A stretch of DNA of 64,000 nucleotides from Auanema rhodensis (lineage: Eukaryota; Animalia; Nematoda), in the NCBI GenBank assembly GCA_964057225.1, contig OZ059895.1:13640001-13704000 (forward strand), in the 5' to 3' direction. Shown here piece after piece: positions 6,732 to 36,257 of this stretch (its first letter is position 1; each line of letters begins with the position of its first letter). The notes beneath the pieces are model-generated. The model had not been told where the DNA came from. It did no database searches and saw only the letters and a program-made list of their open reading frames with translations. The position numbers were made by a program, and so were the translations under genes.

Positions 6732-6807
6732 GAAAACATAAATGATAAAAGCTCATAAATAATTAGTATATATATTTGTTCATTTAAAGTAGAGAAAGAT
6801 GTTTTAA

Positions 6808-9447: not shown

Positions 9448-9619
9448 TGTTGTCAAAATGGTGCACAAAATAGCTTAAATTTTACATGTTAAACAACATA
9501 AAAGAATAGTTTAAGATAACGAAACGGATTCTCCATTTTAAGAACTTTCTTATATAATCATCAATCATTTATATTGTACATCACTTCCTCATAAAATTTC
9601 TCATTTACAAACTGTTATA

Positions 9620-10110: not shown

Positions 10111-10251
10111 CATTTCAACACTCTCGACTGATGAAAATTTTTTTTGTTCATTTATTTACCTGTTGCAATTGTAGGTTTCCACAGAATCGTTTCTCGTGAG
10201 CAGGACTGTGTGCTAGCAGATATAGCGAATTAAGATTAGCGAGCATTTTCT

Positions 10252-12828: not shown

Positions 12829-13137
12829 CAATTTATATGATCTTTGATGTGCTTTGTACAATTTATCATAATTTTATCTCATTATTGTTTTACTTCGTAA
12901 TTTCAAATAAAATTGCTTTAAATGTCTAAATTGAAACAACTAGGAGAAATATCGATAGCAGTTCGATATAAGGGCTTTTTTCGTTAGCTTTGGTGGCGAG
13001 TCTTATTGATTTCGAAGCTGTGAGCGAGAGGGCGGAGCAGGTCTCATCCTTAACCACTTCTGTTGACCTCACGCAGTACATCGATCTAATCAGTTATATT
13101 CCTTACTATTTAGCGATTTAATCGAGACTTGAATGAA

Positions 13138-14501
13138 ATGGTTAAGTTAACGGAATCAACCGTTTACATAAGAACAAAAACATCCGTCGAAGCTGTTAAA
13201 AGATTAAATCTTTGGTAAGTTATCCATTTTGAATATACATATATTTCATTTCTCTCATCTATAACTAATTGAAATCTGATTTGGATGATATTTTAGGGGT
13301 TGTGACATTGATGATATTTCGATTTGTTCTCGCATGGTTTCTTTAGAAGTATTATCACTTAGGTTGTCTTTATTATAAACTACATTTTCTTCTCATCCAT
13401 GGTTTTCAGTGTTAATAGGGTTGAATCATTGGAGCCATTGAAATATTGTAGCAAGCTTACTGAGCTTTATCTGAGAAAAAATAATATTAATTCCTTATCA
13501 GAACTAGATTATCTAAAGGTTTGTAATCGGCATAACCATCAGTGACATCAACGTTTAAGAATCTGCAAAATTTGCGGGTCTTATGGATGGATGAAAATCC
13601 ATGTGCCCAAATCCATGGATATAGAAATAAGGTTCTTAAGTTACTGCCACAGCTAACAAAATTAGATGATAAAGGTATATACAGTGTTTTATTTTTAATT
13701 CATAACCATTTGCAGCAATTCATTCACACGAAGATTCAGAAAATAGTAAATATGACAATAGTGCAAGTGACAACAATTCCTCGGAAAATGAGCAAACGCA
13801 GAATTTGCAACCCAACTATATTTCATCTTCCTGTTCACAATCTATTTCTGCCAGAAATGAGATATCAACAACAAAATCTCTATATGGTATTATTTGAGAA
13901 AATGTATATTATCATTTAGTATGTTCAGGTGGAGCCATAGTTGATACAGTAATGCAACCGCAATTAGTTCACTACGGCGATAATACTTCGGATGATGATC
14001 GATTTTCAACACGAGAATTACTTCAGTCTAAAATGTCTTCAAGAACTAATCTTATGACACAGTCTGTGTATGGCGCACTCCCTGAGGATGATTGGGGAGA
14101 CTTCAAGTTGGTCTTAGTTTATTCCTACCAAGGATTGAATGCTCATACATTAAAAATTTCAGTGTTGAAGACGATTTGATGCCTTTAACAATTGATTCCC
14201 TGACTCCCCGAATGTGCGCTAGCATGCACGAATCCTTGGATCGTAGCTGTTATCGTTCTCAAACAAATTCTTATGGTCGTAGTGTCAGCGTGCCAAGGCG
14301 TCGAATCCAATCTCGAAATCTTTCTACAAGTCCTGCTCGTGTAAAATAGTTAAAGTTTTTTCAATCAAATATTAAGATTTTTAGGAGCAACGATTATCTA
14401 AAATAATGTCAGCTGTCTCAGTTTTGTTAGATGAGTTAGATCAAGATGGTCTTCGTGCTGTAGTATGTGAAGCACAAAGTCGGATGAAAAAACAGAAATA
14501 A
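13138..14501 (+). CDS. CFAP410: Cilia- and flagella-associated LRR protein 410 (C21orf2 family)
   Basis: MVKLTE...LNLWGCDIDDISIC...LEVLSLSVN...LTELYLRKN...LRVLWMDENPC, and a C-terminal IMSAVSVLLDELDQDGL helix. Confidence 0.9.
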
Positions 14502-14876
14502 CCTATTTTTCTAGGATTAATCTTATACTAACGGCCCCTATTCTTGATTGGTTTTTATGTTTTGATTAAAGCTACTTTTAACAATTTGATCGGTTTAACT
14601 ATTTTCAATATATGTAAATCAAATATACTATAATAAATGTTTTAATTATTTTAATTTTATAATGCAGTTGATCACATAAATTACAGTCAAAGTCACAAAT
14701 TTAAATTATACGTTTATAAAAAAAAACAATATATTCAAGGTTATTTACCTCTCTGGCTCCGCCTACATTCTCAATCATTGAGCACTCTGTATTGCTAAAC
14801 TTGTTTGATGTCAAGTTGGTGTCGTCAGTATTAGAAGTCTTGTTTTGCAGACCATCTTCCATTAGTTGTCAGAGCT

Positions 14877-17308
14877 ATGACATATAACTTGCGAGTAATA
14901 ATTCTGTTTCTTATAGTGAGTTTTTTTCTACTCTTCAAGCATAATATTTGAATTATATATATTATATATTTAACTAATTTTTTCTATTTTAAAAATGCTC
15001 ACCTTTTCTTTCATTTTTTAAATCCAAGTTAAATACATTTCTTTATACTATTAAGATGTTCTTCTACCTGAAAGAGTTAGGAAAATGATCATTATTGATA
15101 AAGTTAAGATGATATGGAGAGTGTAGAGGACATCGTGATATATATAATCCTCAAAAATAAACATATTACTATGTATTCATATTATTCAACGTTTAAAATG
15201 ATCACAAAATAGATTTTTCTGGAGCTCATCCAAAATGTATTTTTCCTAATCCTGTACGCTCAGCAAGTACGGTATGTCCTTGGCATTTAAGAGCAGATTA
15301 ATATCTATAATTCGCAATAGCGTCCTTCTTCGTTAGGATAACCTTTGGCTCTTACATCCAAAGCTATAAACTCAAAAAATAGTTTATATTTCATTAGACA
15401 ACAAAGTAATTGCAAGCAACATAATTTTCCTTAAATAAAAACAACATTTCGAGTAGCAAGAGATTTTCAAATATTTTCAACCTTTAGATAAAACTTTTTA
15501 ATTTTTCAGATAAGATATGGATCCTCCAAAATTCTAGATAATCGTTTAATAGGTTTGATTCAATAATTGTGTTTCAAAATTAACAAAAAAGGTTTAGAAA
15601 ACCCTAAAGTTACCTGTGGCCCTAACGATCTTACTATTGAAGCTCATAGTGAGGATATTTTTGAAGGACAGGTAAACATCTGATTTATTTTTCAATACAT
15701 TCTTATTTATTAGGTTTATATTAAAAATCATAGACGATCATCTTCGGATTGTTATGCCACTTACTCGAAAGCAAACTATTCCAATACTCCCAAACTATCT
15801 CTACCTCTTAGTAGAATTTCAGCATGCGGTCTAGAAATGCAAAGAGATGTTAATATTGGAATAATATTAATCTTTTGAACATTCTGTTTTAGACAAGCTC
15901 TAAACGTTTACAGCTTTCTGCAGTTATTGTTTTTGCTTTCCATCCTTCGTTCATAACAGCAGGTGACCGAGCCTTTGCTGTTCAATGCTTGTTTCATCAA
16001 GGAGATTACCCTGTTTTTACCGCTTTCAATCTTACTGAGTAAATCAATTTTAATTCAATTAGATTGTAGAATCAATGATGTTTAAGGAATTTCCACTCAA
16101 TTCCAGTACAGGGATATGCTGAATATCCTACAGTTGAACTCAGTATTGTTAAAGGAAAAATGGCAGATTCTGTAAATGGTGAGTGGCTTCTTTAGTATCC
16201 ATAAAAATAATTTTTTGCTAGATTCTCCCACAGACATATCGATTGGTCAACCATTAATGTTGGTGTGGCATCTAACAAATGAATCAAGTAAGCAAATTAA
16301 CACTATTTCTATGAAAACTTATTTTTTTTAAAAGTTGGGAGTGAGTTTTAAAAAAATACTATTGTAATATTTCTGACCTTGGCGCATAGTCTTGTATAAA
16401 TAAAAGGAATGGCTAACAAGAAAGTTTTTGGAGTTTTTTATACATTTCCTTTTGTTTGCCAATATATAACTGCCTTGAACTCGATGTGTTAGACTTCTTC
16501 CATGCAATTAGTTGGAAGGAAACTTCCCGATATGTACATCCAATCTTATAATTTTCCAGTGGTGTATGGTATTCGGGTATTGTACTGTACAGCGCAGTCC
16601 AAATCTGGACTAAGTATGCAAATTTTAAACAACGATTGCTCTCAAGATTATGGTCTAGTATCTGATGTGCGGTTAGTTTTCCCATTAAAATATATATTTA
16701 TTAAATTTCATTTGCAGTTACTCCGATGAACACAATCGAGCTTTTGCGGATGTCACTGCTTTCAAATTCCCAGACCAAGCAGAACTAAAAATCCGATGCC
16801 ACACAAAGCTGTGCATAAAAAAGTAATTTTATTTATTGTTTATATACAGACTTATTAAATGAATTTAGATTCGATCATTTACAATTAGGTGGAGCTAATC
16901 AACAAGATTTATGCCAAAAAGCAGTGGTATGGTTTGAACTTTCGTTTTTTAAAGTTTAATATATATTAGACATGTGACGATAAAACCTCAAAAAGTAAAA
17001 GAAGCACACCGTGGCATTTGGATGATTCAACCATAGTCGTAGAAGGACAAGCGAGAAATTTGGATAAAAAGCATTACTTAAGTGCAAAATTAGATTTCAA
17101 TCAATGTGAATATTAATATTATTTCATCAATAATTTCATCTTTTTTCCAGTTTCTGAATCTGAAGACTGGACTGCTCATACCACATGCCTTGATTACTCA
17201 ATCTCAGCTTTGATATCAGGAATATCACTCTCTTTATATATTACAACAACAGTCGTCGTTTTCATATTTATTTGTGGAAAAATTAAATTAACCAAGTTTT
17301 ACTTATAA
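14877..17308 (+). CDS. Cuticlin-like ZP-domain protein
   Basis: Signal peptide MTYNLRVIILFLI|IRYGSS; PKVTCGP, VFAFHPSFITAGDRAFAVQC, AFKFPDQ; furin-like KSKRS site; C-terminal transmembrane segment. Confidence 0.85.
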
Positions 17309-17402
17309 TTGTGTTTTTCGTAAAAATGTTAACGGGTACTTTAAATTGAATAAACTTCGTCTTACTTTGCTTCAAAATTACAACTCTTTACAAGCCTTAA
17401 CA

Positions 17403-17535: not shown

Positions 17536-20500
17536 ATGGATGGTTCCACTCTACGATCAACGAAACAATTGGATTATCCTTATTTTCCATTTCGAATTCC
17601 GGTAGATTATGTTCTTGTATCTCGAATTGATAATTTAAGTAAACAGACGCTTAGAACATCATTTGAAAAAGTATTCAAAGAATGTATATATATGTAATGA
17701 AAATTTTTATTTTTTAGAGTTGTAAAAAAGAAGGACTTATTGTAAATCATGAGGTTACCGGAAAAATCTGTTTTACCCTCATTAGTGCACCTTTTCATAG
17801 ATTATGTAGAGAAAGTGAGAAAAGTCAGCTCTCATTTGCTTTAAAAGATGTATAACTCATAGGAATAATCCAAAGTTTTGTTTTTCCTTTTAGTGTGCCT
17901 TCAAACCTCAACGTCCCGCTTACTGTTCTTCTTTGTACAAACTGTTATTTGGGGATGAAACAGGTAATTTTACTATTAAATACACACTATAGTAAACTTT
18001 TTGTAGAATATTGTATTAGTATGCCGTTTCAACGTAAATTTTCTCATTTATTCCATAACTATACCAATGAGAAGCTTTTTTTTAATTCTGCCGACCGAGC
18101 TAAGCTTGTCCATCAGGTGAGCTGAAAACAATTTATGTTTTAGAAAAAACGTTATGATGTAGATACTAACCCGAATTGACATTAATCAATTCATAGAAGA
18201 GAAAAAGACAGAAAACAAACATTCTTCTTCCAGCATTGAAGAAGTTAAAGAAATAGGTATATATAAAACACGTTTCAATTTATTAAATTATAATTTTGAA
18301 CTCTCTAAATATTATTTTTAAAAATGAAATTTAGACGAAACTTTAAAACAGAGAGGATTGGAACATCTTCTCTTGGAAGATGTATATGAAGAAGCGTTTA
18401 TTCTTCACGAACCAAGCGAGGTATTTATTTTGACTTTTTAAAAATATTTTAAACTATTTTAGGTTGAACCTTACTTCAAACGTTTGAAAGAAGACTCTGT
18501 GTTGAGTTTCCTAGAAGCAATAAGCGAAATAGACGACGATCCACGAAAACAAATCAGTGACACTTGGTCAAAGTATTTTAATTTACTTGTTTTCTTCTAT
18601 TATTTCATTTTCAGGTTCTACAAGCCTCAACCGTTAGATAAGATCCGAGATTATTTTGGTGAAGAAATAGCATTTTACTTTGCCTGGCATGGAACATTTA
18701 TAACTTTGTTATGGCCAGCAGTAGTACTTGGTTTAATTGCGGTTACATATGGAATGATTAAAAAGTAAATTTTAAACATGTTCTTGTGAAATATTATTTG
18801 GTTTACAGTATAAAAGAAGAACCTTTAATTATTGCTAATTGTACCAGTACAAAGTATCTAGATGTTAACAGTATGATAACCTGCCCACAATATGACAGGT
18901 ACAAAATCATATTTAATATTTAATTCTTGCGTTTCAGCAGTCAACGATTATTTTCAAAAATCTGGAGATGGTTTATGATGTCTTTTGATAATGAGTTCAA
19001 TGCTTTTTATGCAGCTTTTGTTTCAATTTGGGGTTGTTTTCTACTATATTTCTTACCTAATAGTCTCCTTTTAGGTTCTTTTTTCTATCAAATTTGGAAA
19101 AGAAATAATTCAGTTTTATCTTTTCGGTGGAATACCGAAGACTTTCAAAATTATGAGTCAGATAGACCTGAATATGTTGGACATGTATTAAGAGAAGTAA
19201 AATATTTTTTTTAAAATGTCGTTATTTATATATTTTTGAGGATGTAATAACAAGAGAATCTGAATGGATAACGCCAACAATAATAATTTTTTTTAAAGTA
19301 AGGAAAATAAAAATAAAACGAAAGATTCATTAAATACTAATTTCAGATGATTATATCATATATAGTTGTTGGACTATGCATGTTGATTGTTGTTATTAGC
19401 GTTTTTTGTGTTATAGTTTTCAAAATGTGGGCTATACATACATTTGGCTGCGACCGATCAGTACGAACTTATTTTTATTAAGAAATTTAATGATTTATTA
19501 TTCAAATAATTCTTAGTATTTTAGTTTACTTGGCAATGCAGTATTGTAACAACAATTATTCCTTCCGTATTAAATACAAGCTCGACAATGCTTCTAAGTT
19601 GGGTTTATGGTCAAGTTGTTATAATGCTAAATGACTGGGGTAACATCTGAATTTATGTTTAATAACTTTGAAATTTTTTTAGAAAATCATAGAACCAATT
19701 CTGAGCATCATAACGCGTTAATTATCAAAATATTTGCATTTCAAATGATTAATAATTATACTTCTTTATTTTACATAGCGTTTATTAGGCCTGAGAGTAA
19801 TTTAAGTTTTAAAGCTGAGAAAATGGTTTAGTAATGGAAATACGTTTTCAGGGATTTCAAAGCAATGGTCTATTCGGGTTAGGAACTCACTATAAGGATA
19901 CTTGCTTGGAAACTACATGCTCTATGTCCTTAGCTGTGCAATTAATAACAAATTTACTTCTGAAACCTGTACCAAAATTCATCCAGGATATCATTATTCC
20001 GTATGATAGTACATTCAATACAAATATTATCTTATCTATATCTTTTTCAGATTTATAGTTTTGCTTTATAAAAAAGCCAAGATGAAGCAAACGAAAGTTT
20101 CTGATAACGTACCTCAGACTGATGAAACGAATGTTTTATCAAGAGAATGGGTGAAACCTGACGCCGGTCAATTTACCTTATGGGAATTTAATGAAAAGAT
20201 AATTTTATTAGGAACAACTATGGTATTTGAAAGAACTTATCACAAATATTTTTACTTGTTTTAGATGTTTGCTGCGCTTTTTCCCTTGGCTCCTTTGATA
20301 TCTTTAGTAATAGGAATTGTAGATTTACGAATTGACGCTCATAGGTTACTCTGGTTTAATCGACGACCTATTCCTCAGTTTGCAAACGGTATTGTTTTCA
20401 ACAAAAATTCGTCACATATATATCATATAATCAATGAAAATACGGGGGTAACTCCGTTCCGTTACACCCGGGAATTTAGAGAACCAAATGTTGTAAATAA

Positions 20501-21296
20501 TTTGTTCTAAAGTTAATGATTTTTTCATGGTTCAGTTTGGAAAGACCCAGTTTTTTCTTAATTGTGGTTCTCTTACCCCCCTAAGAGTAAAAGTTTATAT
20601 CCGATCAATTTACGGATATTTGGATCAACTCATGCTTTTAGCTTAAAAAACTTCATAAGTGAAATTTACTTTAATCTGATATATAATTACATATATAGTA
20701 TATATATATATATATATATATACATTTTACATTATGAACAGGAATTGGGATATGGCTACCAATCTTGTCCTTCTTACAATATGCAGCAGTGTTAACAAAC
20801 GCTTTTATAGGTGTCTTTTCAAAATAATATTTTTTATATAAATATATATTACAGTTGCATTTACTTCTGATTTCTGTATAAATTTTTATAGTCAAGAGAA
20901 ATGTACTATCAAGGATCGTTTGGTTATAGTAATTGTTTTTCAAGTATGCATGGAATAGTCACCGTGATTATTTTACTATTTCAGAATATGGTATTTATAC
21001 TAAAATACGTAATGCAAAGCTTAATTCCAGATGTTCCTAGTTATATCAAAGTCATTAAACGAAAGGTATTTTCAATCTTATGTAGCAATACATACATGTA
21101 CACATGCGCTTTAGAGGAGATGCATTCTATATCATGTAATTGAAAAAGGAGATTTGCCACATAAGCTGAAACAACGGTTGGCATATAGCATGTTTATTTT
21201 TCCTAATGTACTAGAATTATCAGTAAACGTGCTAGAAAAGCAAAAATTGCTTGGATTGCATCTCGAGTAAAAGGAACAGCTACAACATCTTTATGA
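17536..21296 (+). CDS. anoh-1-like: Anoctamin/TMEM16 protein, full-length copy
   Basis: LDYPYFPFRIPVDYVLV, QPLDKIRDYFGEEIAFYFAW, ENHRT, FQMINNYTSLFYIAF, FAALFPLAPL, LRIDA, GIWLPIL; stop at 21294-21296. Confidence 0.92.
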
Positions 21297-21398
21297 TCAA
21301 TGTTTTAACCCCTAAAAATAAAGCTCAGGTTAGAACTAAAAGAATTTTACAAATATCGAAAATATATTTTACATTGAATTATTTTGTTACAGATTTTC
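19437..21398. repeat. 1,962-bp host segment, copy A (anoctamin 3' half, 3' UTR region and last lipase codons)
   Basis: Recurs at 25193-28670 (with a 1516-bp insertion) and at 32465-34426; ORF offsets are 5756, 7272 and 13028. Confidence 0.95.
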
Positions 21399-21995
21399 AG
21401 TAGTATACAAAAAGTTGACGCTGGCGCACCTGTTTGCCCAAATGCGATTTTTGCAGATTTTCAACATTTTTTCATCACTATTTTAATGCACAAAATCCAT
21501 AACCCATAACCGATTACAACAACTCGGAGATCAGTTAATTTATTCAATTCATAAGTCTTAATACTTCGAAAATGTGTCATTTTAAACAATTTTCAATAAT
21601 GGTAAAAAGGTCGAAATGTGCTACCATAAAAATGTGGCCGAAATGGATGGTCGAAATATTGCGCTAACAATTTTGAATAAAAATTGTTCCCGTATGATCC
21701 TTGACTCAATGTGAGATATTCTAAAATTACAACGTTAATCAAAACATTAAAGAATTTAAGCAAATTTATTCTCGAAGAGTATTCCAAACATAAACCATCA
21801 ATAATCAAATCATCATCATCATATCACAACAGATTCCTAGGACACAAAAAATCGCACTCAATGTCTAAGTCACCCAAATACTCAATATACAAAATGAGCA
21901 CAAAATTTTTTATCATAAAGCCAATTTTAAACATAATTCAGCTCTTGCAAACACTAAAGTTTTAACGCAGAGTTCATCCATTCCAAGTGGTGCGA

Positions 21996-23207
21996 TCATT
22001 CATTCCAATCGACATCTTCTTCCGGCGGTAAAAATTCCTAAAGTCATTGATTAATTCAATGATGTTGCATTAAGTAAAGCTTACCACAATATTCGCATGA
22101 ATGTTTGTGATCGGAATAATTCTACATCGTCCACCCGATGCCGGAGATGCCGGTCGACCATTATTGTCCGTTGTATGATGAACCTTTTCAGTCTCAACCT
22201 TCATCCCAATCAACCTTCCATCATCGCTCCAACAACTTCCACCGCTGTCGCCTTTAAAAGAGCCACTCGAGCCCAGAAAACGCAGCTTTGATGTCATATC
22301 ACTAGAAATAATTCCCGCGGAGAATGAGATGTGTGAAGTTCTTCCATGCATAACCGAATAGCCCATCTGAAATCATTTTCAGTGTAGATAATAATCAAAA
22401 TTCATAAGTTGTAAGTGAAATACTTAATTAAACTTACCAAAACGTATTTCATTCCTCTCTTCGGCTCAACTGCTTCCATAATCAAATCTCTATCGCAGAG
22501 TTCGGCAGATTTAGATTGAAGCACAATTAGATCGAGAGCGTCATTAACCAGTACTACGCAAGTATCAACAACAACTTGCAGGTTTTGATATGACAAAAGT
22601 TTAATAGAATCGCCTTTTACAAAACTCTTGTTTTCTCCATGACGGTAAGTAATTGCCAAATTTTTCGTCACTGGGATAGCCGATCTCTTCATATTGTCTC
22701 CTTTCGTGTAATACCAAGCATATTGGCATATTCGAGAAACCACATCTCCATCCACAGGTAGCGGTTCCAACTCTGGATCAATCCTTTGTCGCTTTCTAGA
22801 TGTAGATTCTAAAACAAAAATTAAATATGCTCAATGAATATCAAACCCTCAACGTCAGCAGGAGTTGATGGTCTTGAAGGAGTTTTATCCGATTCCACAC
22901 TGAACTTCATATTTGGAAAGTCCTCCGGTAGTATAAACGCCGAACCATTTTCATTCATTCTAAATTAATTGAAATACAATCAGAATCAATTAAACTTGAA
23001 TTAAATCTGATAAAACGTTTTTATAATCAGAAATAATATGACTTACTGGCAAAATATATGATCGTCATCTAATCGATAAGACAGCGAAATAACCTCCTCA
23101 TCACCAAGCAAGAAGGCGGATTTGATTGAGCTCTTGTTAATCGTATTACCCGTCAAAGAAAATCTCACGTCCTTGGCGAACATCTTAATTTTGATTATTT
23201 TCACCAT
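21996..23207 (-). CDS. Cargo trypsin/chymotrypsin-like serine protease, 5 exons, 322 aa, no signal peptide
   Basis: Exons 23207-23047, 22959-22847, 22808-22438, 22366-22085 and 22037-21996 join in frame through GT-AG introns. Triad candidates are LAITYRH, DLIVL and FKGDSGG. A TTTTCAG acceptor lies at 23251-23257. Confidence 0.85.
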
Positions 23208-23557
23208 TTTTTCATAATTATGAGCTTGATCCTTATTGATCCCAATGAATCTGAAAACAAAGAATTAATTGGAAACTAATGTAAGAACATCATGCACTAT
23301 GTAAATATCCAATTCAATTCGAGAGAGAGAGAGGGAAAGTAGGAAAAGTTGTCAAATTACTAAAATTTAAGGAGAAAATAACAATGACACGGATGGGAAA
23401 ACACGCACAACGTGAACTACTAAAGAAAAGAAAGTCTCTTTTTTATTCACAAAAGTTAATGGAAGATTTGGCAGTTTTTCGCTTTTCTCTGTGTCTCTGC
23501 TCACAAAAGCGTCTCTGCCTTCCACTCTAGCCCAACGCGCGATTGTGCTTGGTCAGT

Positions 23558-23731
23558 GATCTTACAGATTGACCACTCTCTAGATCTTACAGGAGGAAGA
23601 GAAAAAAAAGGTCACACAAAGAGAAAGAGAAGTTGCCAGGGCAAATTGAGTTGACAAACAAATTGAGAAAAAATTGACATCATAAATTGAGAGAACTGAT
23701 GAAAAAGGGAGAGTGGTCAATCTGTAAGATC
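23558..23731. repeat. Perfect 23-bp inverted repeat upstream of the cargo protease (also at +7272)
   Basis: GATCTTACAGATTGACCACTCTC at 23558-23580 and its reverse complement at 23709-23731. Confidence 0.85.
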
Positions 23732-24049
23732 TATAACCGTTCCATTATGCTCCTACGTATATTGAACAGACCATTGTAGTCTGCTCAACTACGCGTATAG
23801 TATTCCATAAGTGTAGCGATATGGAAACAGAGCATAAGGATTACATAAGATAAGGAAATATAGGTTTATTATACACAATACAATATCATTACAATACAAT
23901 AACACAAGGATAAAGTAAACTACATTTACAAGACAAAGACTAATATATAAGATTAACTAAGTTAGATACAAACCGTCCATGGGCTTGCAAAGGGGCGAAC
24001 TCCCGAAGAGGGGCATGAGGGAAGGCGGTGCCATTCCTCATTCCTCTAG
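23730..24049 (+). mobile_element. Possible short non-autonomous Helitron nested in the Maverick-like element (also 31002-31321)
   Basis: Starts A|TCTATA; ends with the hairpin ATGAGGGAAGGCGGTGCCATTCCTCAT followed by CTAG|T. Confidence 0.4.
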
Positions 24050-24319
24050 TCGGTCTGGCTCTAACCCTGCAGTTACATATATAGAGTCTCCGAATGGAAC
24101 GTAACTCCACGAGTTTGGTCACAGCTAAACCTTCTCGAAGGTGTTGGCAAACAGGTATGAAAGAACGAAGTGTATCATTTAAGAACGATTTACGTCGCAG
24201 AATTTCTTCAGTTTTTGTATTGTTATTTCATTTTCAAGATGTTTTTCAAGCAAAGTTCAATATTTTCTTCTAAGATGGGGATGCTTTTTGTGTCAAGAAA
24301 TCTCTACAAAAGCATTAAA

Positions 24320-24633
24320 AAGAGATAAAGAATCCCAAACTTTCAAGAACACAAAAATTTGGTGATGAGTCTAAAAAAAGTAAAGGAATAAAGAATAATG
24401 TGGTCAAGAATGAACTCAGTGTAGATGATTTAAAAAATTGTTTGTTTGATAAAACTATTGTCAGAAAGACACAGTATTGTATCAGGAGTGTTAAACATCA
24501 AATATGCACACAATGTCAAAATAAAGTTGCTCTGAATAATGAATCTGGGGATCATAAACGTTACATTCTCAAAGATAGTCATTCAACTATGGCTTTTGGT
24601 AATTGTCATATTAAACCAGAGGAAGAAGTTTGA
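24320..24633 (+). pseudogene. C-terminal fragment of protein-primed DNA polymerase B (Maverick type)
   Basis: KKSKGIKNNVVKNELSVDDLKNCLF...IRSVKHQICT...KVALN...DHKRYILKD...TMAFGN resembles the pPolB C-terminus; an in-frame stop lies upstream and there are no catalytic motifs. Confidence 0.8.
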
Positions 24634-25985
24634 TTCTTAGAATCTAATATCAAACCTGAGATTCTTTGATTCTAAAATCTTGAGAATACTGCTTCTGAAG
24701 TCATAAGATTCTAATAATTTGAGAAGTAAAAGCCAGTGATAACCACAATGATGTGTTCCAAATTCTTGAATTGAAATGTCGAAAGATTTATTTTATCTTT
24801 TTTATTTTTACTCTTGAGATACTCTTGAAGTTCTATTGGGGGATCTAATCCTTTATTTTGAATCTTATACGGCAAAGTGTCTCTCATGAAAACATCACGG
24901 AAATTCTTGAGTTCAAGTACTTTTACAAGCTCAGGAGATCTAGATTTGTTAGAGCTTTAAGGTTTTTATGAAATTTCATTTATTACCTTAAAATTGTTCG
25001 AAATGATCAAAAATTGTAAAATGGGCAAAATGGGCAAATGACCATATGGTGAAAAAAATGACGGGTTTTCACTTAATGTAAACATATTTTTGAAAAAAAA
25101 ATTTTTAAAATAAAGCCTAAATTTGGCTAAAAAGTGTAAAAAATTGGGATTGGGCAAAATGTCCATCTCGCGTCAAATTTTTATATACTACTCATACATT
25201 TGGCTGCGACCGATCAGTACGAACTTATTTTTATTAAGAAATTTAATGATTTATTATTCAAATAATTCTTAGTATTTTAGTTTACTTGGCAATGCAGTAT
25301 TGTAACAACAATTATTCCTTCCGTATTAAATACAAGCTCGACAATGCTTCTAAGTTGGGTTTATGGTCAAGTTGTTATAATGCTAAATGACTGGGGTAAC
25401 ATCTGAATTTATGTTTAATAACTTTGAAATTTTTTTAGAAAATCATAGAACCAATTCTGAGCATCATAACGCGTTAATTATCAAAATATTTGCATTTCAA
25501 ATGATTAATAATTATACTTCTTTATTTTACATAGCGTTTATTAGGCCTGAGAGTAATTTAAGTTTTAAAGCTGAGAAAATGGTTTAGTAATGGAAATACG
25601 TTTTCAGGGATTTCAAAGCAATGGTCTATTCGGGTTAGGAACTCACTATAAGGATACTTGCTTGGAAACTACATGCTCTATGTCCTTAGCTGTGCAATTA
25701 ATAACAAATTTACTTCTGAAACCTGTACCAAAATTCATCCAGGATATCATTATTCCGTATGATAGTACATTCAATACAAATATTATCGGCGCTTTTTCCA
25801 TATCTATACCCCCCGATTTTAGCCCCGCCCCTTTTGCCGTTTGATGCATACTTTTGTTAAATGTGATAACAATATGAGATACGGAGGTTTATAGAATATA
25901 TAAAAGCTAAAAAAACGAAAATATAAATACAAAAGTAATTATTATTAAATCATTAACAGATTTGATTAATAGAATTTAACATTTT

Positions 25986-26905
25986 TCAAATTTCTTCTTG
26001 AGTAAATTCAGCAATATCTTGTAATATAGTTTCGAAAAGATCCCTGTTCCTATTTCTTCTACGCCACATAAACTCACATAGGTATCCGTCTAGCATTGTT
26101 TGACGTACCCCATACATGCGCTTGAATTTCGCTTTAGCCAAGCTCCAAAGTCCTTCAATCATATTAGTGTTAGCTCCTGTCTCTGGATCCGTGAAGTTGT
26201 ATCTGTGGTTAACTGTTAAGTGTCTATACTGTTGGATAAGACCATCAATTCCCCCATATGCTCTCCAACAATCACTAACTATGGTAGTTTGTGGCTCTAT
26301 ACAGTTAGTAATGCAGCTGTTCAAGGTTTCTGTAGTTCTATCAGGAACAGCATATAAAAAACACTCTTCTGTTTCCCTACATACTCCCCCGAAAACCCAT
26401 TGAGCTGGTCTTACCCTTCCTACATTGAACTTCCTACGTGAAACCAACGTTTCATCAATTTCCACAGTCATGTTTGGACCTCCAATCTTCATGGGATGCT
26501 TTAAGATGCTGAACGCACAAATTTCCCTCATATAATTGTTGTAGTCAACAGCGGTCTGGCAAGATTTCATATCTAATTCATCTTGGCAAAACTTAACGGT
26601 GGTATATTCTTTACTCCAACAATACACGAAAAGAATGAACTTTGTGTACGATAATTTTGAGCCTAAAATGTTAATGCTGTTAATATTTAGTTTTTAACTT
26701 TATAACCTTGAAGATATGTTCCTTTCTTAATTAAAACTTCTTTTCTACAGTCCTTTCTGGTGCATCTCCACTTATTTCGAACAACAGAAATGTTCATTTG
26801 TCTCGCGCATCTATCACATTCCTTAGTTTGAGGAATTATTCCTTTCTCTTGCAAAAATTGAACTGCATCAGCTTCAGTACGGAGTCTTTCTTTCAGAGCG
26901 AACAT
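25986..26905 (-). CDS. Merlin DDE transposase, 2 exons, 291 aa
   Basis: Exon 26905-26707 (CDRC...CTRKDC zinc ribbon), a 44-bp intron, then exon 26662-25986 with VEIDET, WVFGG, IVSDCWRAY, HLTVNH, NTNMIEGLW, YLCEFMWRRR. Confidence 0.92.
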
Positions 26906-27006
26906 TTTGAGAAAATACGGTCGGTAACGCAGATGCAATGATAATTTAAGATTCAGTTATTAATATCATAATATATTCCAGTTTTATTGTTGTAATTACA
27001 GCTAAT

Positions 27007-27146
27007 TACAATGTATTACACGCTTTTTAAATTCATGGTTTTACAATGTATTACACGCTTTCTTAATTCATTTTTTTTACAATGTATTACACGCTTTTTA
27101 AATTCATGGTTTTACAATGTATTACACGCTTTCTAAATCCATGGTT
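27007..27146. repeat. ~36-bp tandem repeat x4 inside Merlin, upstream of the transposase
   Basis: TACAATGTATTACACGCTTT...ATTCAT units. Confidence 0.85.
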
Positions 27147-29267
27147 ACTGTGTTAAAATATTATAACCCCATTGGGGGGGAAACCCCCCCAAACCCCCCG
27201 TTTTAGGAAGGGAAGTAAGCTGGTAGTAAAAGTATGCACCAAACGGCAAAAGGGGCGGGGCTAAAATCGGGGGGTATAGATATGGAAAAAGAGCCATATT
27301 ATCTTATCTATATCTTTTTCAGATTTATAGTTTTGCTTTATAAAAAAGCCAAGATGAAGCAAACGAAAGTTTCTGATAACGTACCTCAGACTGATGAAAC
27401 GAATGTTTTATCAAGAGAATGGGTGAAACCTGACGCCGGTCAATTTACCTTATGGGAATTTAATGAAAAGATAATTTTATTAGGAACAACTATGGTATTT
27501 GAAAGAACTTATCACAAATATTTTTACTTGTTTTAGATGTTTGCTGCGCTTTTTCCCTTGGCTCCTTTGATATCTTTAGTAATAGGAATTGTAGATTTAC
27601 GAATTGACGCTCATAGGTTACTCTGGTTTAATCGACGACCTATTCCTCAGTTTGCAAACGGTATTGTTTTCAACAAAAATTCGTCACATATATATCATAT
27701 AATCAATGAAAATACGGGGGTAACTCCGTTCCGTTACACCCGGGAATTTAGAGAACCAAATGTTGTAAATAATTTGTTCTAAAGTTAATGATTTTTTCAT
27801 GGTTCAGTTTGGAAAGACCCAGTTTTTTCTTAATTGTGGTTCTCTTACCCCCCTAAGAGTAAAAGTTTATATCCGATCAATTTACGGATATTTGGATCAA
27901 CTCATGCTTTTAGCTTAAAAAACTTCATAAGTGAAATTTACTTTAATCTGATATATAATTACATATATAGTATATATATATATATATATATATACATTTT
28001 ACATTATGAACAGGAATTGGGATATGGCTACCAATCTTGTCCTTCTTACAATATGCAGCAGTGTTAACAAACGCTTTTATAGGTGTCTTTTCAAAATAAT
28101 ATTTTTTATATAAATATATATTACAGTTGCATTTACTTCTGATTTCTGTATAAATTTTTATAGTCAAGAGAAATGTACTATCAAGGATCGTTTGGTTATA
28201 GTAATTGTTTTTCAAGTATGCATGGAATAGTCACCGTGATTATTTTACTATTTCAGAATATGGTATTTATACTAAAATACGTAATGCAAAGCTTAATTCC
28301 AGATGTTCCTAGTTATATCAAAGTCATTAAACGAAAGGTATTTTCAATCTTATGTAGCAATACATACATGTACACATGCGCTTTAGAGGAGATGCATTCT
28401 ATATCATGTAATTGAAAAAGGAGATTTGCCACATAAGCTGAAACAACGGTTGGCATATAGCATGTTTATTTTTCCTAATGTACTAGAATTATCAGTAAAC
28501 GTGCTAGAAAAGCAAAAATTGCTTGGATTGCATCTCGAGTAAAAGGAACAGCTACAACATCTTTATGATCAATGTTTTAACCCCTAAAAATAAAGCTCAG
28601 GTTAGAACTAAAAGAATTTTACAAATATCGAAAATATATTTTACATTGAATTATTTTGTTACAGATTTTCAGTAGTATACAAAAAGTTGACGCTGGCGCA
28701 CCTGTTTGCCCAAATGCGATTTTTGCAGATTTTCAACATTTTTTCATCACTATTTTAATGCACAAAATCCATAACCCATAACCGATTACAACAACTCGGA
28801 GATCAGTTAATTTATTCAATTCATAAGTCTTAATACTTCGAAAATGTGTCATTTTAAACAATTTTCAATAATGGTAAAAAGGTCGAAATGTGCTACCATA
28901 AAAATGTGGCCGAAATGGATGGTCGAAATATTGCGCTAACAATTTTGAATAAAAATTGTTCCCGTATGATCCTTGACTCAATGTGAGATATTCTAAAATT
29001 ACAACGTTAATCAAAACATTAAAGAATTTAAGCAAATTTATTCTCGAAGAGTATTCCAAACATAAACCATCAATAATCAAATCATCATCATCATATCACA
29101 ACAGATTCCTAGGACACAAAAAATCGCACTCAATGTCTAAGTCACCCAAATACTCAATATACAAAATGAGCACAAAATTTTTTATCATAAAGCCAATTTT
29201 AAACATAATTCAGCTCTTGCAAACACTAAAGTTTTAACGCAGAGTTCATCCATTCCAAGTGGTGCGA

Positions 29268-30479
29268 TCATTCATTCCAATCGACATCTTCTTCCGGCGG
29301 TAAAAATTCCTAAAGTCATTGATTAATTCAATGATGTTGCATTAAGTAAAGCTTACCACAATATTCGCATGAATGTTTGTGATCGGAATAATTCTACATC
29401 GTCCACCCGATGCCGGAGATGCCGGTCGACCATTATTGTCCGTTGTATGATGAACCTTTTCAGTCTCAACCTTCATCCCAATCAACCTTCCATCATCGCT
29501 CCAACAACTTCCACCGCTGTCGCCTTTAAAAGAGCCACTCGAGCCCAGAAAACGCAGCTTTGATGTCATATCACTAGAAATAATTCCCGCGGAGAATGAG
29601 ATGTGTGAAGTTCTTCCATGCATAACCGAATAGCCCATCTGAAATCATTTTCAGTGTAGATAATAATCAAAATTCATAAGTTGTAAGTGAAATACTTAAT
29701 TAAACTTACCAAAACGTATTTCATTCCTCTCTTCGGCTCAACTGCTTCCATAATCAAATCTCTATCGCAGAGTTCGGCAGATTTAGATTGAAGCACAATT
29801 AGATCGAGAGCGTCATTAACCAGTACTACGCAAGTATCAACAACAACTTGCAGGTTTTGATATGACAAAAGTTTAATAGAATCGCCTTTTACAAAACTCT
29901 TGTTTTCTCCATGACGGTAAGTAATTGCCAAATTTTTCGTCACTGGGATAGCCGATCTCTTCATATTGTCTCCTTTCGTGTAATACCAAGCATATTGGCA
30001 TATTCGAGAAACCACATCTCCATCCACAGGTAGCGGTTCCAACTCTGGATCAATCCTTTGTCGCTTTCTAGATGTAGATTCTAAAACAAAAATTAAATAT
30101 GCTCAATGAATATCAAACCCTCAACGTCAGCAGGAGTTGATGGTCTTGAAGGAGTTTTATCCGATTCCACACTGAACTTCATATTTGGAAAGTCCTCCGG
30201 TAGTATAAACGCCGAACCATTTTCATTCATTCTAAATTAATTGAAATACAATCAGAATCAATTAAACTTGAATTAAATCTGATAAAACGTTTTTATAATC
30301 AGAAATAATATGACTTACTGGCAAAATATATGATCGTCATCTAATCGATAAGACAGCGAAATAACCTCCTCATCACCAAGCAAGAAGGCGGATTTGATTG
30401 AGCTCTTGTTAATCGTATTACCCGTCAAAGAAAATCTCACGTCCTTGGCGAACATCTTAATTTTGATTATTTTCACCAT
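29268..30479 (-). CDS. Cargo trypsin-like serine protease, copy 2
   Basis: Matches 21996-23207 at +7272. Confidence 0.85.
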
Positions 30480-31591
30480 TTTTTCATAATTATGAGCTTG
30501 ATCCTTATTGATCCCAATGAATCTGAAAACAAAGAATTAATTGGAAACTAATGTAAGAACATCATGCACTATGTAAATATCCAATTCAATTCGAGAGAGA
30601 GAGAGGGAAAGTAGGAAAAGTTGTCAAATTACTAAAATTTAAGGAGAAAATAACAATGACACGGATGGGAAAACACGCACAACGTGAACTACTAAAGAAA
30701 AGAAAGTCTCTTTTTTATTCACAAAAGTTAATGGAAGATTTGGCAGTTTTTCGCTTTTCTCTGTGTCTCTGCTCACAAAAGCGTCTCTGCCTTCCACTCT
30801 AGCCCAACGCGCGATTGTGCTTGGTCAGTGATCTTACAGATTGACCACTCTCTAGATCTTACAGGAGGAAGAGAAAAAAAAGGTCACACAAAGAGAAAGA
30901 GAAGTTGCCAGGGCAAATTGAGTTGACAAACAAATTGAGAAAAAATTGACATCATAAATTGAGAGAACTGATGAAAAAGGGAGAGTGGTCAATCTGTAAG
31001 ATCTATAACCGTTCCATTATGCTCCTACGTATATTGAACAGACCATTGTAGTCTGCTCAACTACGCGTATAGTATTCCATAAGTGTAGCGATATGGAAAC
31101 AGAGCATAAGGATTACATAAGATAAGGAAATATAGGTTTATTATACACAATACAATATCATTACAATACAATAACACAAGGATAAAGTAAACTACATTTA
31201 CAAGACAAAGACTAATATATAAGATTAACTAAGTTAGATACAAACCGTCCATGGGCTTGCAAAGGGGCGAACTCCCGAAGAGGGGCATGAGGGAAGGCGG
31301 TGCCATTCCTCATTCCTCTAGTCGGTCTGGCTCTAACCCTGCAGTTACATATATAGAGTCTCCGAATGGAACGTAACTCCACGAGTTTGGTCACAGCTAA
31401 ACCTTCTCGAAGGTGTTGGCAAACAGGTATGAAAGAACGAAGTGTATCATTTAAGAACGATTTACGTCGCAGAATTTCTTCAGTTTTTGTATTGTTATTT
31501 CATTTTCAAGATGTTTTTCAAGCAAAGTTCAATATTTTCTTCTAAGATGGGGATGCTTTTTGTGTCAAGAAATCTCTACAAAAGCATTAAA

Positions 31592-31905
31592 AAGAGATAA
31601 AGAATCCCAAACTTTCAAGAACACAAAAATTTGGTGATGAGTCTAAAAAAAGTAAAGGAATAAAGAATAATGTGGTCAAGAATGAACTCAGTGTAGATGA
31701 TTTAAAAAATTGTTTGTTTGATAAAACTATTGTCAGAAAGACACAGTATTGTATCAGGAGTGTTAAACATCAAATATGCACACAATGTCAAAATAAAGTT
31801 GCTCTGAATAATGAATCTGGGGATCATAAACGTTACATTCTCAAAGATAGTCATTCAACTATGGCTTTTGGTAATTGTCATATTAAACCAGAGGAAGAAG
31901 TTTGA
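31592..31905 (+). pseudogene. pPolB C-terminal fragment, copy 2
   Basis: Matches 24320-24633 at +7272. Confidence 0.8.
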
Positions 31906-32464
31906 TTCTTAGAATCTAATATCAAACCTGAGATTCTTTGATTCTAAAATCTTGAGAATACTGCTTCTGAAGTCATAAGATTCTAATAATTTGAGAAGTA
32001 AAAGCCAGTGATAACCACAATGATGTGTTCCAAATTCTTGAATTGAAATGTCGAAAGATTTATTTTATCTTTTTTATTTTTACTCTTGAGATACTCTTGA
32101 AGTTCTATTGGGGGATCTAATCCTTTATTTTGAATCTTATACGGCAAAGTGTCTCTCATGAAAACATCACGGAAATTCTTGAGTTCAAGTACTTTTACAA
32201 GCTCAGGAGATCTAGATTTGTTAGAGCTTTAAGGTTTTTATGAAATTTCATTTATTACCTTAAAATTGTTCGAAATGATCAAAAATTGTAAAATGGGCAA
32301 AATGGGCAAATGACCATATGGTGAAAAAAATGACGGGTTTTCACTTAATGTAAACATATTTTTGAAAAAAAAATTTTTAAAATAAAGCCTAAATTTGGCT
32401 AAAAAGTGTAAAAAATTGGGATTGGGCAAAATGTCCATCTCGCGTCAAATTTTTATATACTACT

Positions 32465-34426
32465 CATACATTTGGCTGCGACCGATCAGTACGAACTTAT
32501 TTTTATTAAGAAATTTAATGATTTATTATTCAAATAATTCTTAGTATTTTAGTTTACTTGGCAATGCAGTATTGTAACAACAATTATTCCTTCCGTATTA
32601 AATACAAGCTCGACAATGCTTCTAAGTTGGGTTTATGGTCAAGTTGTTATAATGCTAAATGACTGGGGTAACATCTGAATTTATGTTTAATAACTTTGAA
32701 ATTTTTTTAGAAAATCATAGAACCAATTCTGAGCATCATAACGCGTTAATTATCAAAATATTTGCATTTCAAATGATTAATAATTATACTTCTTTATTTT
32801 ACATAGCGTTTATTAGGCCTGAGAGTAATTTAAGTTTTAAAGCTGAGAAAATGGTTTAGTAATGGAAATACGTTTTCAGGGATTTCAAAGCAATGGTCTA
32901 TTCGGGTTAGGAACTCACTATAAGGATACTTGCTTGGAAACTACATGCTCTATGTCCTTAGCTGTGCAATTAATAACAAATTTACTTCTGAAACCTGTAC
33001 CAAAATTCATCCAGGATATCATTATTCCGTATGATAGTACATTCAATACAAATATTATCTTATCTATATCTTTTTCAGATTTATAGTTTTGCTTTATAAA
33101 AAAGCCAAGATGAAGCAAACGAAAGTTTCTGATAACGTACCTCAGACTGATGAAACGAATGTTTTATCAAGAGAATGGGTGAAACCTGACGCCGGTCAAT
33201 TTACCTTATGGGAATTTAATGAAAAGATAATTTTATTAGGAACAACTATGGTATTTGAAAGAACTTATCACAAATATTTTTACTTGTTTTAGATGTTTGC
33301 TGCGCTTTTTCCCTTGGCTCCTTTGATATCTTTAGTAATAGGAATTGTAGATTTACGAATTGACGCTCATAGGTTACTCTGGTTTAATCGACGACCTATT
33401 CCTCAGTTTGCAAACGGTATTGTTTTCAACAAAAATTCGTCACATATATATCATATAATCAATGAAAATACGGGGGTAACTCCGTTCCGTTACACCCGGG
33501 AATTTAGAGAACCAAATGTTGTAAATAATTTGTTCTAAAGTTAATGATTTTTTCATGGTTCAGTTTGGAAAGACCCAGTTTTTTCTTAATTGTGGTTCTC
33601 TTACCCCCCTAAGAGTAAAAGTTTATATCCGATCAATTTACGGATATTTGGATCAACTCATGCTTTTAGCTTAAAAAACTTCATAAGTGAAATTTACTTT
33701 AATCTGATATATAATTACATATATAGTATATATATATATATATATATATACATTTTACATTATGAACAGGAATTGGGATATGGCTACCAATCTTGTCCTT
33801 CTTACAATATGCAGCAGTGTTAACAAACGCTTTTATAGGTGTCTTTTCAAAATAATATTTTTTATATAAATATATATTACAGTTGCATTTACTTCTGATT
33901 TCTGTATAAATTTTTATAGTCAAGAGAAATGTACTATCAAGGATCGTTTGGTTATAGTAATTGTTTTTCAAGTATGCATGGAATAGTCACCGTGATTATT
34001 TTACTATTTCAGAATATGGTATTTATACTAAAATACGTAATGCAAAGCTTAATTCCAGATGTTCCTAGTTATATCAAAGTCATTAAACGAAAGGTATTTT
34101 CAATCTTATGTAGCAATACATACATGTACACATGCGCTTTAGAGGAGATGCATTCTATATCATGTAATTGAAAAAGGAGATTTGCCACATAAGCTGAAAC
34201 AACGGTTGGCATATAGCATGTTTATTTTTCCTAATGTACTAGAATTATCAGTAAACGTGCTAGAAAAGCAAAAATTGCTTGGATTGCATCTCGAGTAAAA
34301 GGAACAGCTACAACATCTTTATGATCAATGTTTTAACCCCTAAAAATAAAGCTCAGGTTAGAACTAAAAGAATTTTACAAATATCGAAAATATATTTTAC
34401 ATTGAATTATTTTGTTACAGATTTTC
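32465..34426 (+). pseudogene. Duplicated anoctamin 3' half (copy C), continuing into the native lipase 3' end
   Basis: Matches 19437-21398 at +13028. Confidence 0.88.
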
Positions 34427-36257
34427 CTTTAAGCATATTTGGAAAATCTTTTTTTATTTCTTCTATAATTGGGGTATACACCAATGGAGCAGCTTTCAAT
34501 CCCCAATTGAAGTCTATATGTGAAAATCCATCAAACCCTATAAATAATTTGAATTGTAAAAAGAAAATCTCAATCTACCACCTTCTTCGGATAAAAGAGT
34601 ATTTTTAAGACGTGGAATGAGATATTCTTTGATATCAGTAGGATCCGCACATGTGTCATTGAATCCCCAATAAAGCCTTATTGGAACCGTGATGTCTTCC
34701 ACTTTATATTCTGGAGGTTGATGCTACATAACACCTGTTTAAAACGTTATTTAAGAAAATTCACCGTTCCATAATGTAATTTATTTAAAATCTTAGTTCC
34801 ATAATCCCACATTTGAAAACGTTTATAATGAACATTTTGAGCAAATTGAATCATTGTTTTTGTTGATGTTCCCGCTGGTGTGTGGTTAATGTATATAGGT
34901 ACTCTAGTCTAAAAACAAAGAAAATATAAAGAAAAGCAAAATTATTGTTTGTTACTTCGTTAAGTTGCCCGCTTTCTTTACCAGAGATGAGAAACATTAT
35001 GTTATCACAAAACTGGTATGTTTCCTTGTCCTCACAGACATCTTCTGCTATCATATGCGTAAACCAATCTGGCATTAAGAATTCATCTTCGCCAGTTACT
35101 TCAAGTATCGCCTAAGTTGAATGTTAGCGCAGATAATAGTATATCAATATTATACGTCAATAACTTCGTATCTATCTGCCATCCATCGGAACAGTCCTTG
35201 GATATGGGCTACTGAAGCAACAGGCCCCATTGCGAAGAACTCACGAATCTATTTTAATAGTGATTGAAACCTTCGATATTTTAAAACCTTATGTTCTAGA
35301 TCATGATTCTGAGAAAATTCAGCAAAAGCAGTTAAAGTCCCCATTGAAAAACCAATATAGTAGAGCTGTTTTTGTTGAGTTGCATCTATAACATAGTTGA
35401 TCATTGTAGGCAAGTCTTGAGATGCCATCTGAAAGTATATATGATAGAATTATTTTTGTTGAAGTTATCAACCTGATCCCATCCAAAATCCCAAAACTTG
35501 TGGCTTGTAGTATTCAAATATGAATGACCAATAGAGTATTCATTTCCTCTAAAATTACCTAGCCAAACATCGAAGCCAGCGTCTGCGAGAACAAATGCTA
35601 AATAAATTATATAACATTTTGTATTAGACAAATTAGTATAAATAACCAGCGCTTTGATGAGGAAGGTTCAAAACCCAACTTGCCGAGCTTCCTTCTAATC
35701 CATGTTGTACAAAAACTACAGGCCTGTTCACATCTGATGTACCATTTTCGAATTGTCTGAAAATTACTCTATATATTTTTTATAATATTATCAAATCAAC
35801 AATATTCTTATTTTTTTTTTAAGATTTCTTTCAAAATATCATAATTAGCTCGTGTTCTCATCATTAATGAAAGCCAAAGTAGTTGTTTAACTGATGGACT
35901 GATAATAACTATAATATTATCTCATTCTTGTGAGCATCTTGTTCCTGTTTCTGAATACTTGCTTATACGAAGCTCTTCATCTTTTATTCACGAAACTTTT
36001 TTTATAGTTTGTTACGAACTTGTAAGGAATCCTATGTAATGTCAAGATGTATCCATCACCAGTTGTAACTCGATGTGTTTCGACTGAATAATTCCATCTA
36101 TGAGCAATTCCTATCTAAAAGTATAAATGTATAATATAAGCTACAGTTTTCTTACAAAGTCCAATGTCAATTCTGGATCTATTGGAAATTCTGTTGGAAA
36201 TGCTTCTACGAGTGATATTATAGAGATTATTGTAATTAAATATGATTGGTAACGCAT
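34407..36257 (-). CDS. Acid/gastric-type lipase (lipl family)
   Basis: Signal peptide [14 protein letters not shown]; [48 protein letters not shown] nucleophile elbow, HIDFNWG. Confidence 0.92.

Follow-up and report, generated by a model that had tools for sequence, protein, structure and literature searches.

A 64-kb stretch of the genome of the nematode Auanema rhodensis (contig OZ059895.1, positions 13,640,001 to 13,704,000; hereafter the window) contains a 3.8-kb element, E, which is very probably the remnant of a nematode Maverick/Polinton reduced by internal deletion; it would have kept an apparently intact cargo gene for a WOSP-type serine protease and have been amplified locally rather than by an integrase. 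The part of this view that holds E to be Maverick-derived, deleted and in possession of a WOSP cargo is well supported by the sequence comparisons presented here. An initial annotation of the window had described a single 3.8-kb unit with AGTAGT...ACTACT inverted ends, one protease gene, and the C-terminus of a DNA polymerase B of the protein-primed type (pPolB) as its only viral-type remnant, and had proposed that the unit is a deleted, non-autonomous Maverick whose protease may be mobile or selfish. The unit itself was confirmed, but a second and identical copy of it, the tandem array that contains both copies, a broken viral protease gene, a nested insertion and the lack of a short target-site duplication had been overlooked. 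The first copy of E is made up of the following features.

21399-25192, no strand assigned: element E, copy 1, delimited by its pair of terminal inverted repeats (TIRs) and by its collinearity with a Maverick of Mesorhabditis belari (terminus, cargo, upstream region)
21399-21421, plus strand: left TIR, 23-nt core AGTAGTATACAAAAAGTTGACGC, with weaker similarity to about 54-100 nt
21996-23207, minus strand: WOSP (WASP) serine protease gene of 322 amino acids, with five exons (23207-23047, 22959-22847, 22808-22438, 22366-22085 and 22037-21996)
23208-23540, minus strand: conserved 5' flank of the WOSP gene, a probable promoter/5' untranslated region
23738-24101, no strand assigned (also 31010-31373 in copy 2): nested insertion of 364 bp resembling a miniature inverted-repeat transposable element (MITE), whose inverted ends measure 9 nt and which is accompanied by a TAAC duplication
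24103-24330, no strand assigned: segment of 228 bp that is 90-93% identical to the interval between cargo and integrase of the M. belari Maverick
24319-24633, plus strand: pPolB remnant consisting of the last 104 codons and the native stop codon, with one large 5' truncation and otherwise free of stops and frameshifts
24673-24869, minus strand: putative remnant of an adenovirus-type cysteine protease (PRO) gene, convergent with pPolB and found by tblastn with an open reading frame (ORF) of the Logan contig L006
25170-25192, minus strand: right TIR, 23-nt core, an inverted match to the left TIR

E is 3,794 bp long and is bounded by 23-nt inverted ends of the AGTAGT type. The left and right TIR differ at two of the 23 positions, and a gapped alignment extends a weak similarity only to ~54 nt. 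The terminal 23-mer occurs four times in the 64-kb window, versus 0.00 occurrences expected from 100 shuffles. The boundaries given in the initial annotation stand. That these ends are Maverick ends, and not those of another TIR family, follows from a comparison with a largely complete Maverick of M. belari (locus L004; GCA_958450365.1), which holds a WOSP homologue (P0031) and, upstream of it, intronless ORFs for an integrase with an rve core and a chromodomain, a double-jelly-roll capsid protein and a Pox_A32 packaging ATPase. The terminal 23-mer of E is present, with two mismatches, ~550 bp downstream of the WOSP gene of this locus (11753-11775), and the similarity with the left TIR of E ends at the identical terminal base. 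Both ends of E can be aligned with the L004 terminus over ~100 nt, and all three sequences diverge directly after the final ACTACT, so that E and a real M. belari Maverick have termini that are homologous to the last base. The homology continues inwards: the right subterminal region of E (24870-25192) is 65% identical to positions 11440-11775 of L004, in both elements the WOSP gene is found at a distance of about 550-600 bp from the terminus and points outwards with its 3' end, and a homologous upstream region follows. In E, the WOSP stop codon is located 597 bp inside the left end, with the 3' end of the gene toward the TIR. In addition, the DNA that separates the cargo from the pPolB stub in E is collinear with the spacer from cargo to integrase in L004, and the spacer segment is also 92% identical to positions 19005-19093 of a C. 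sp. 36 locus (L001). Judged from these alignments, the relationship between E and L004 is mosaic, the termini being 72-85% identical, the spacer segment 90-93% and the WOSP DNA ~58%.

One difference between the two elements is that L004 keeps its integrase, capsid and ATPase genes and E does not. Using the M. belari Maverick proteins as queries in tblastn searches, we found no match for integrase, capsid or ATPase in the whole window, as the initial annotation had reported for the unit. None of the ORFs of E has a Pfam match to an rve integrase. Of pPolB only the last 104 codons are present in E, without a match to PF03175, and as regards the morphogenesis module, no capsid or ATPase match was obtained within E and PRO is found only as a broken remnant. 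The size of E is 3.8 kb, versus 13-25 kb for an autonomous Maverick/Polinton. Because the integrase, the capsid genes, the ATPase and about nine-tenths of pPolB have been lost, E would be unable to move or replicate alone. An Rfam search of positions 19000-35000 gave no match.

The identification of the pPolB C-terminus, which had been part of the initial annotation, was borne out by way of relatives and not by a direct profile match. The peptide encoded by 24319-24633 has no direct match in Pfam or PHROG, PDB sequence searches with its relatives and with a 41-sequence profile returned no match, and an IMG/VR scan with the peptide alignment was empty. An Auanema fusion protein (P0013), tried as a guide to the peptide, is a WD40 fusion and was uninformative. 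The sole close relative of similar size is P0035, which is 77% identical and is encoded by the 1.15-kb contig L006. The ORF preceding P0035 on this contig shows the motifs NSxxGK and DTDS, which we take to be motifs of family-B polymerases, and the ORF following it, which is convergent, has a Pfam match to Peptidase_C5, the endoprotease of adenoviruses, that is below the family cutoff (E 0.0012). For the preceding ORF, 3,912 relatives were found, some of them with precomputed PF03175 assignments. When one of these (P0085) was retested, its residues 6-125 matched positions 336-461 of the 468 positions of the PF03175 model, which accounts for the last ~100 residues of the protein falling outside the Pfam model. 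Within this set, 45 uninterrupted proteins (222-275 amino acids) align through their C-terminal 72-99 residues with the peptide of E, and a comparison with the C-terminal columns of a profile of those proteins gave an hhalign probability of 99% (E 2.6e-18). Capsid, ATPase or integrase fragments were also seen on two metagenome contigs that encode relatives of the peptide. Region 24319-24633 is thus identified, indirectly and through these uninterrupted relatives, as the C-terminus of pPolB. It is not the only viral-type remnant, as had been claimed, because the PRO remnant is located between pPolB and the right end; this PRO remnant is broken, its 5' part being missing and its reading frame containing at least one frameshift.

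The cargo gene, by contrast with these viral remnants, looks intact and constrained. Its four introns (87, 38, 71 and 47 nt) all have GT..AG borders, and the spliced coding sequence of 969 nt encodes 322 amino acids with no internal stop. The predicted protein aligns without gaps, residues 1-322 on 1-322, with the 322-residue C. auriculariae protein P0026 (70% identity), in agreement with the single, clean, intron-containing protease gene of the initial annotation. The highest identity found, 80%, is with a protein of C. sp. 36; the identity is 60% with CBG26403 of C. briggsae and 49% with P0031 of M. belari, whose coding DNA is ~58% identical. Scanning 1.84 billion representative proteins with exon 3 returned 20 relatives, and all those with a named organism are from nematodes (Caenorhabditis briggsae, C. 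auriculariae, C. tropicalis, Auanema and Bursaphelenchus). According to Widen et al. (10.1101/2022.07.12.499685), the WASP ("Worm HtrA-like Serine Protease") family has two members in C. briggsae, and CBG26403 is listed as one of these; the family was later named "wosp" (PMC10680173). The cargo belongs to this nematode-only family. The view that the gene is intact and constrained is based on ratios of non-synonymous to synonymous substitution (dN/dS) of 0.23-0.38 in pairwise Nei-Gojobori comparisons with the copies of C. sp. 36, C. auriculariae and C. bovis, and on codon-position identities that decrease from second to first to third positions.

The motifs RHGEN, LDLIVLQ and GDSGG are present in the window exons at the conserved columns of the family, with the His, Asp and Ser residues kept, and the protein has a weak match to Pfam Trypsin_2. 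A fold was predicted, with the family alignment, for the 70%-identical proxy P0026. In this model (pLDDT 81), a small N-terminal beta/alpha domain (residues 1-82) is connected through a disordered linker (83-106) to a beta-rich domain, for which the best PDB matches are DegS, HtrA1 and DegQ (E about 1e-8). As to an N-terminal ubiquitin-like domain, the beta/alpha domain 1-82 is confidently predicted, and followed by the linker 83-106, in the proxy only. One WOSP homologue carries the UniRef name "TDP-43 N-terminal domain-containing". Judged from this model, the cargo looks like a functional HtrA-like serine protease, with a small beta-grasp domain at the N-terminus that a disordered linker separates from the protease part. 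Its homology restricted to nematodes, its HtrA-like domain with the triad, and its position as an intron-containing gene next to a TIR with its 3' end outward are all features of the WOSP family.

The WOSP gene has conserved flanks too, at its 5' as well as at its 3' end. Within the 5' flank, ~290 bp (23251-23537) are 71-76% identical to the sequences upstream of the WOSP genes of C. bovis, C. auriculariae, C. sp. 36 and M. belari, and a TTTTCAG acceptor-like site is located 46 nt upstream of the ATG. This flank is probably the gene's own promoter/5' untranslated region with a trans-splice site. A small conserved ORF upstream of the WOSP gene was considered and is probably absent, the similarity being short and reading like conserved non-coding DNA. 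It should be noted that the introns and flanks of the WOSP genes align at 74-92% between hosts (loci L001, L002, L003 and L005 compared), and that the short introns and flanks are as conserved as third codon positions or more so (e.g. 91% versus 58% for C. bovis). The alignable introns and flanks fit the horizontal spread proposed by Widen et al.; for the excess over synonymous sites we have found no explanation. Between the flank and the spacer segment lies the nested MITE-like insertion, which has the inverted ends CGTTCCATT and AATGGAACG and is flanked by a 4-bp TAAC duplication. Both copies of E have it, and the homologous sites of M. belari (L004) and C. sp. 36 (L001) are uninterrupted and lack it. 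Directly adjoining it, in the region of E upstream of the cargo, is a 30-nt inverted repeat (23551-23580 and 23709-23738, 90% complementary, 128-nt spacer), part of which is kept in M. belari and C. sp. 36.

A target-site duplication (TSD) of 5-8 bp is characteristic of autonomous Mavericks/Polintons, and E has none. Its flanks (ATTTTC versus CATACA) contain no TSD of 5-8 bp and no direct repeat of 2-10 bp, and 1,962 bp of host DNA, F, is repeated on both sides of E in place of a short TSD. Self-comparison of the window showed that the overall structure is X-F-E-F*-E-F-Y, with a repeat unit of 5,756 bp. In addition to E copy 1, the array is composed as follows.

19437-21398, plus strand: F copy 1, a host segment of 1,962 bp that includes the 3' part of an anoctamin gene, matching positions 190-460 of the Pfam model
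25193-28670, plus strand: F copy 2 (25193-25787 and 27296-28670), split by a 1,508-bp transposon that appears to be of the Merlin type
25788-27295, minus strand: the putative Merlin-type DNA transposon of 1,508 bp, with an IS1595-like DDE ORF at 25986-26627 (Pfam E 8e-17)
28671-32464, no strand assigned: second copy of E, with 100% identity to the first
32465-34426, plus strand: F copy 3, 100% identical to copy 1, forming the end of the array

The exons in F match positions 190-460 of the Anoctamin profile, and the exons for positions 1-97 are found just upstream, in X, and are contiguous with them. Y contains a convergent alpha/beta-hydrolase gene. The host genes at the array are thus an anoctamin gene at 18484-21143 on the plus strand, whose 3' part is triplicated, and a lipase-like alpha/beta-hydrolase gene at 34541-35631 on the minus strand. 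The interruption of the middle F is classed, from its sequence, as Merlin-type; it has TIRs of ~56-76 nt starting with GGCGCTTTTTCC and is flanked by an 8-bp TSD (ATATTATC). Since it is present in only one of three otherwise identical copies of F, its insertion would be very recent.

The edges of the array are informative about how it was formed. The array starts at the first base of F, which elsewhere follows the right end of E, and stops at the last base of F, which elsewhere precedes the left end of E. Because both edges coincide with E termini, whereas unequal exchange alone would give arbitrary edges within the 5,756-bp unit, the junctions appear to have been made by the ends of the element. 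The simplest reading, we infer, is a two-step origin. An aberrant insertion via the E ends would have led to the duplication of a 1,962-bp stretch of target, which in formal terms is a "target-site duplication" of 1.96 kb (F-E-F), and unequal exchange between the F copies would then have added the second E (F-E-F-E-F), after which the Merlin transposon would have entered the middle F. A variant in the style of sister-chromatid transposition would be equally possible. In maize, alternative transposition of Ac/Ds elements, involving sister chromatids or reversed ends, yields segment-element-segment structures with exact element ends at the junctions. Unlike Mavericks, Ac/Ds are cut-and-paste hAT elements with a known transposase, and we know of no case in which a tandem direct duplication of this kind has been shown for Mavericks. 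Two other explanations of the structure were rejected. F-E-F is not an element with long terminal repeats, because F consists of anoctamin exons that are contiguous with upstream exons and E has introns, and it does not derive from a circle of E plus F that integrated by homologous recombination, because there is no junction between the end and the start of F and no E internal to F.

Several published systems resemble E in part. In the circular Maverick copy described by Widen et al. (10.1101/2022.07.12.499685), pPolB and the cargo are connected at their 3' ends through a single TIR; likewise, the 3' end of the cargo in E points toward the left end and that of pPolB toward the right end. These authors also reported WOSP/WASP proteases in "pseudogenized" Mavericks of C. 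auriculariae and C. parvicauda (10.1101/2022.07.12.499685), which, like E, consist of the same cargo family inside a decayed Maverick with TIRs. The C. auriculariae locus L005 contains a unit of ~6.6 kb (~8118-14775) with related, non-identical inverted ends and with the content and order of E: a TIR-like end, a PRO remnant, a C-terminal pPolB remnant, the upstream region, the WOSP gene and a second TIR-like end. When aligned with the comparator P0043, the pPolB stubs of this unit and of E begin at the same residue, a coincidence whose precision is limited by the ends of local alignments. E differs from this unit by its size of 3.8 kb, its other terminal 23-mers, its nested MITE and its exact tandem array with host DNA. 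On the strength of the shared arrangement, E and the L005 unit may represent one old deleted lineage. Another partial parallel is the C. elegans eri-6/7 locus, where incomplete Polintons, with a pPolB end and a TIR but lacking an integrase, are accompanied by duplication and rearrangement of host gene segments (10.1101/2024.01.15.575659). There, inversions and TIR-derived direct repeats are involved, whereas E is part of a direct tandem array whose junctions are element termini.

Local duplication is also seen at other WOSP loci. That of C. sp. 36 (L001) has 6.2-kb inverted arms (2676-8870 and 16078-9885) that are 97-98% identical, that of C. auriculariae (L005) has the segments 2372-6307 and 13458-17388, 96% identical with a direct period of 11.1 kb, and that of C. 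bovis (L003) has a tandem repeat (5001-6361 and 9246-10616) with 97-99% identity. Host genes are part of these recent local WOSP duplications, an example being the WDR54-like genes of C. sp. 36.

The features described above could be explained differently. E might be a currently mobile, non-autonomous mini-Maverick that is moved, and perhaps packaged, in trans by a full-length Maverick located elsewhere in the genome, and that ferries its WOSP gene within and between species. We regard this as doubtful, even though both E termini are complete to the last base that they have in common with an autonomous relative, the C. auriculariae unit has the same reduced layout with a stub starting at the same P0043 residue, which suggests a deleted lineage older than either copy, and the introns and flanks can be aligned between hosts as Widen et al. 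report for transferred cargo. The matching stub starts are no more precise than the ends of local alignments, and E lacks a TSD of 5-8 bp. Moreover, the two copies in the window belong to one tandem array instead of occupying independent sites, no source of integrase, pPolB and capsid, and no full-length Maverick, was found within the window, and of the eight loci fetched, L004 alone contains the terminal 23-mer, which, as a degenerate TIR pattern, matched no IMG/VR contig. The part of the initial proposal that considered the unit a deleted Maverick stands, but the readings as a mobile vector or a selfish element find no support at this locus, a tandem array that has neither a short TSD nor an antidote-like partner. 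The selfish variant can be made more specific. In C. briggsae, the msft-1/tlpr-1 element contains a WOSP toxin gene that was acquired via a Maverick and is carried by a Mutator-like element (MULE) with 870-bp TIRs, a transposase and an antidote gene (Widen et al.). With E it shares the WOSP protease derived from a Maverick, and it is this origin of the MSFT-1 toxin from Maverick cargo that would favor E being a toxin-antidote element with its WOSP as the toxin. We consider this highly improbable: the MULE TIRs, the MULE transposase and an antidote, or any second intact gene, are all missing from E, the other similarity upstream of the WOSP gene is short and resembles conserved non-coding DNA rather than protein, and the closest named relatives are 60-80% identical, with none near-identical among the proteins returned. 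Furthermore, most of the 235 reported family members are not toxins (Widen et al.).

The capture of a WOSP gene by a MULE in C. briggsae, together with the clean TIR of only 23 nt, might also suggest that the ends of E stem from a non-Maverick TIR transposon, for example a MULE, that picked up a protease gene along with a stray piece of a polymerase. We give this very little credence, because the ends align over ~100 nt with the terminus of an element encoding an rve integrase, a double-jelly-roll capsid protein and an A32 ATPase, no DDE transposase was found inside E, and the retained pieces are in Maverick order. The array, finally, could be questioned rather than the element. All its copies are identical, so that either the events were very recent or the assembly is wrong, and repeats that are 100% identical over 1.96-5.76 kb are unusual save for these two causes. 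The array and the second copy of E would in the latter case be an assembly artefact, the true locus containing one E, or one E and one duplicated F. This seems improbable to us, as the middle F alone contains a 1.5-kb transposon, flanked by a clean 8-bp TSD, which serves as an internal landmark, the edges of the array correspond to the base with E termini, which an assembly program would have no cause to generate, and the WOSP loci in the assemblies of three other species are locally duplicated as well.

Our preferred interpretation, that E is a deleted Maverick relic with an intact WOSP cargo which was amplified locally, also has its weak points. The clean TIR of 23 nt is short compared to the 100-1,500 bp quoted for Polinton TIRs (PMC10748475). 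The pPolB identification is transitive, direct Pfam, PHROG and PDB matches being none, and the fold of the cargo is that of a proxy that is 70% identical to the window protein, and not of the window protein itself. The activity and expression of the WOSP protein are predictions from sequence and model. The search for other copies of E, and for full-length Mavericks with E ends, covered the 64-kb window. Identity of 100% over 5.8 kb is also typical of a mis-assembled repeat, and the two-step origin of the array is a model.

Two other repeats are present in the window. Positions 47088-64000, up to the window end, are occupied by a satellite with more than 60 copies of 265/266-bp units (76-100% identity), and a direct repeat of 928 bp (5807-6731 and 8645-9572) is 99.1% identical, with its copies ~2.8 kb apart.

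To our knowledge, no mechanism other than Mavericks has yet been put forward for the transfer of genes from one nematode species to another. The WOSP proteases are their best-studied cargo, and one of them has turned into a hybrid-incompatibility toxin. WOSP cargo in decayed Mavericks has already been published, and what is distinctive about E is its extreme reduction and the tandem array that is bounded by its termini. E is a very small derivative with a cargo gene that appears to be under purifying selection and with the viral genes gone, which is what would be expected if it is the cargo, rather than the virus, that persists after transfer. In addition, the coincidence between the array and the element termini, without a normal TSD, hints that Maverick ends can join in kilobase-scale duplication of host genes. 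If the same deleted form is indeed shared between species, the question arises whether such relics still spread. A more speculative and rather unlikely extension of this view is that E and the C. auriculariae unit belong to an old lineage of "satellite" mini-Mavericks that has kept no more than its ends, the pPolB and PRO stubs and the WOSP cassette, that still spreads between nematodes at the expense of full-length Mavericks, and whose end-dependent but non-canonical insertion copies kilobases of target DNA. If true, Maverick relics would be a direct source of the duplication of host gene segments, in this case of the 3' half of an anoctamin gene.

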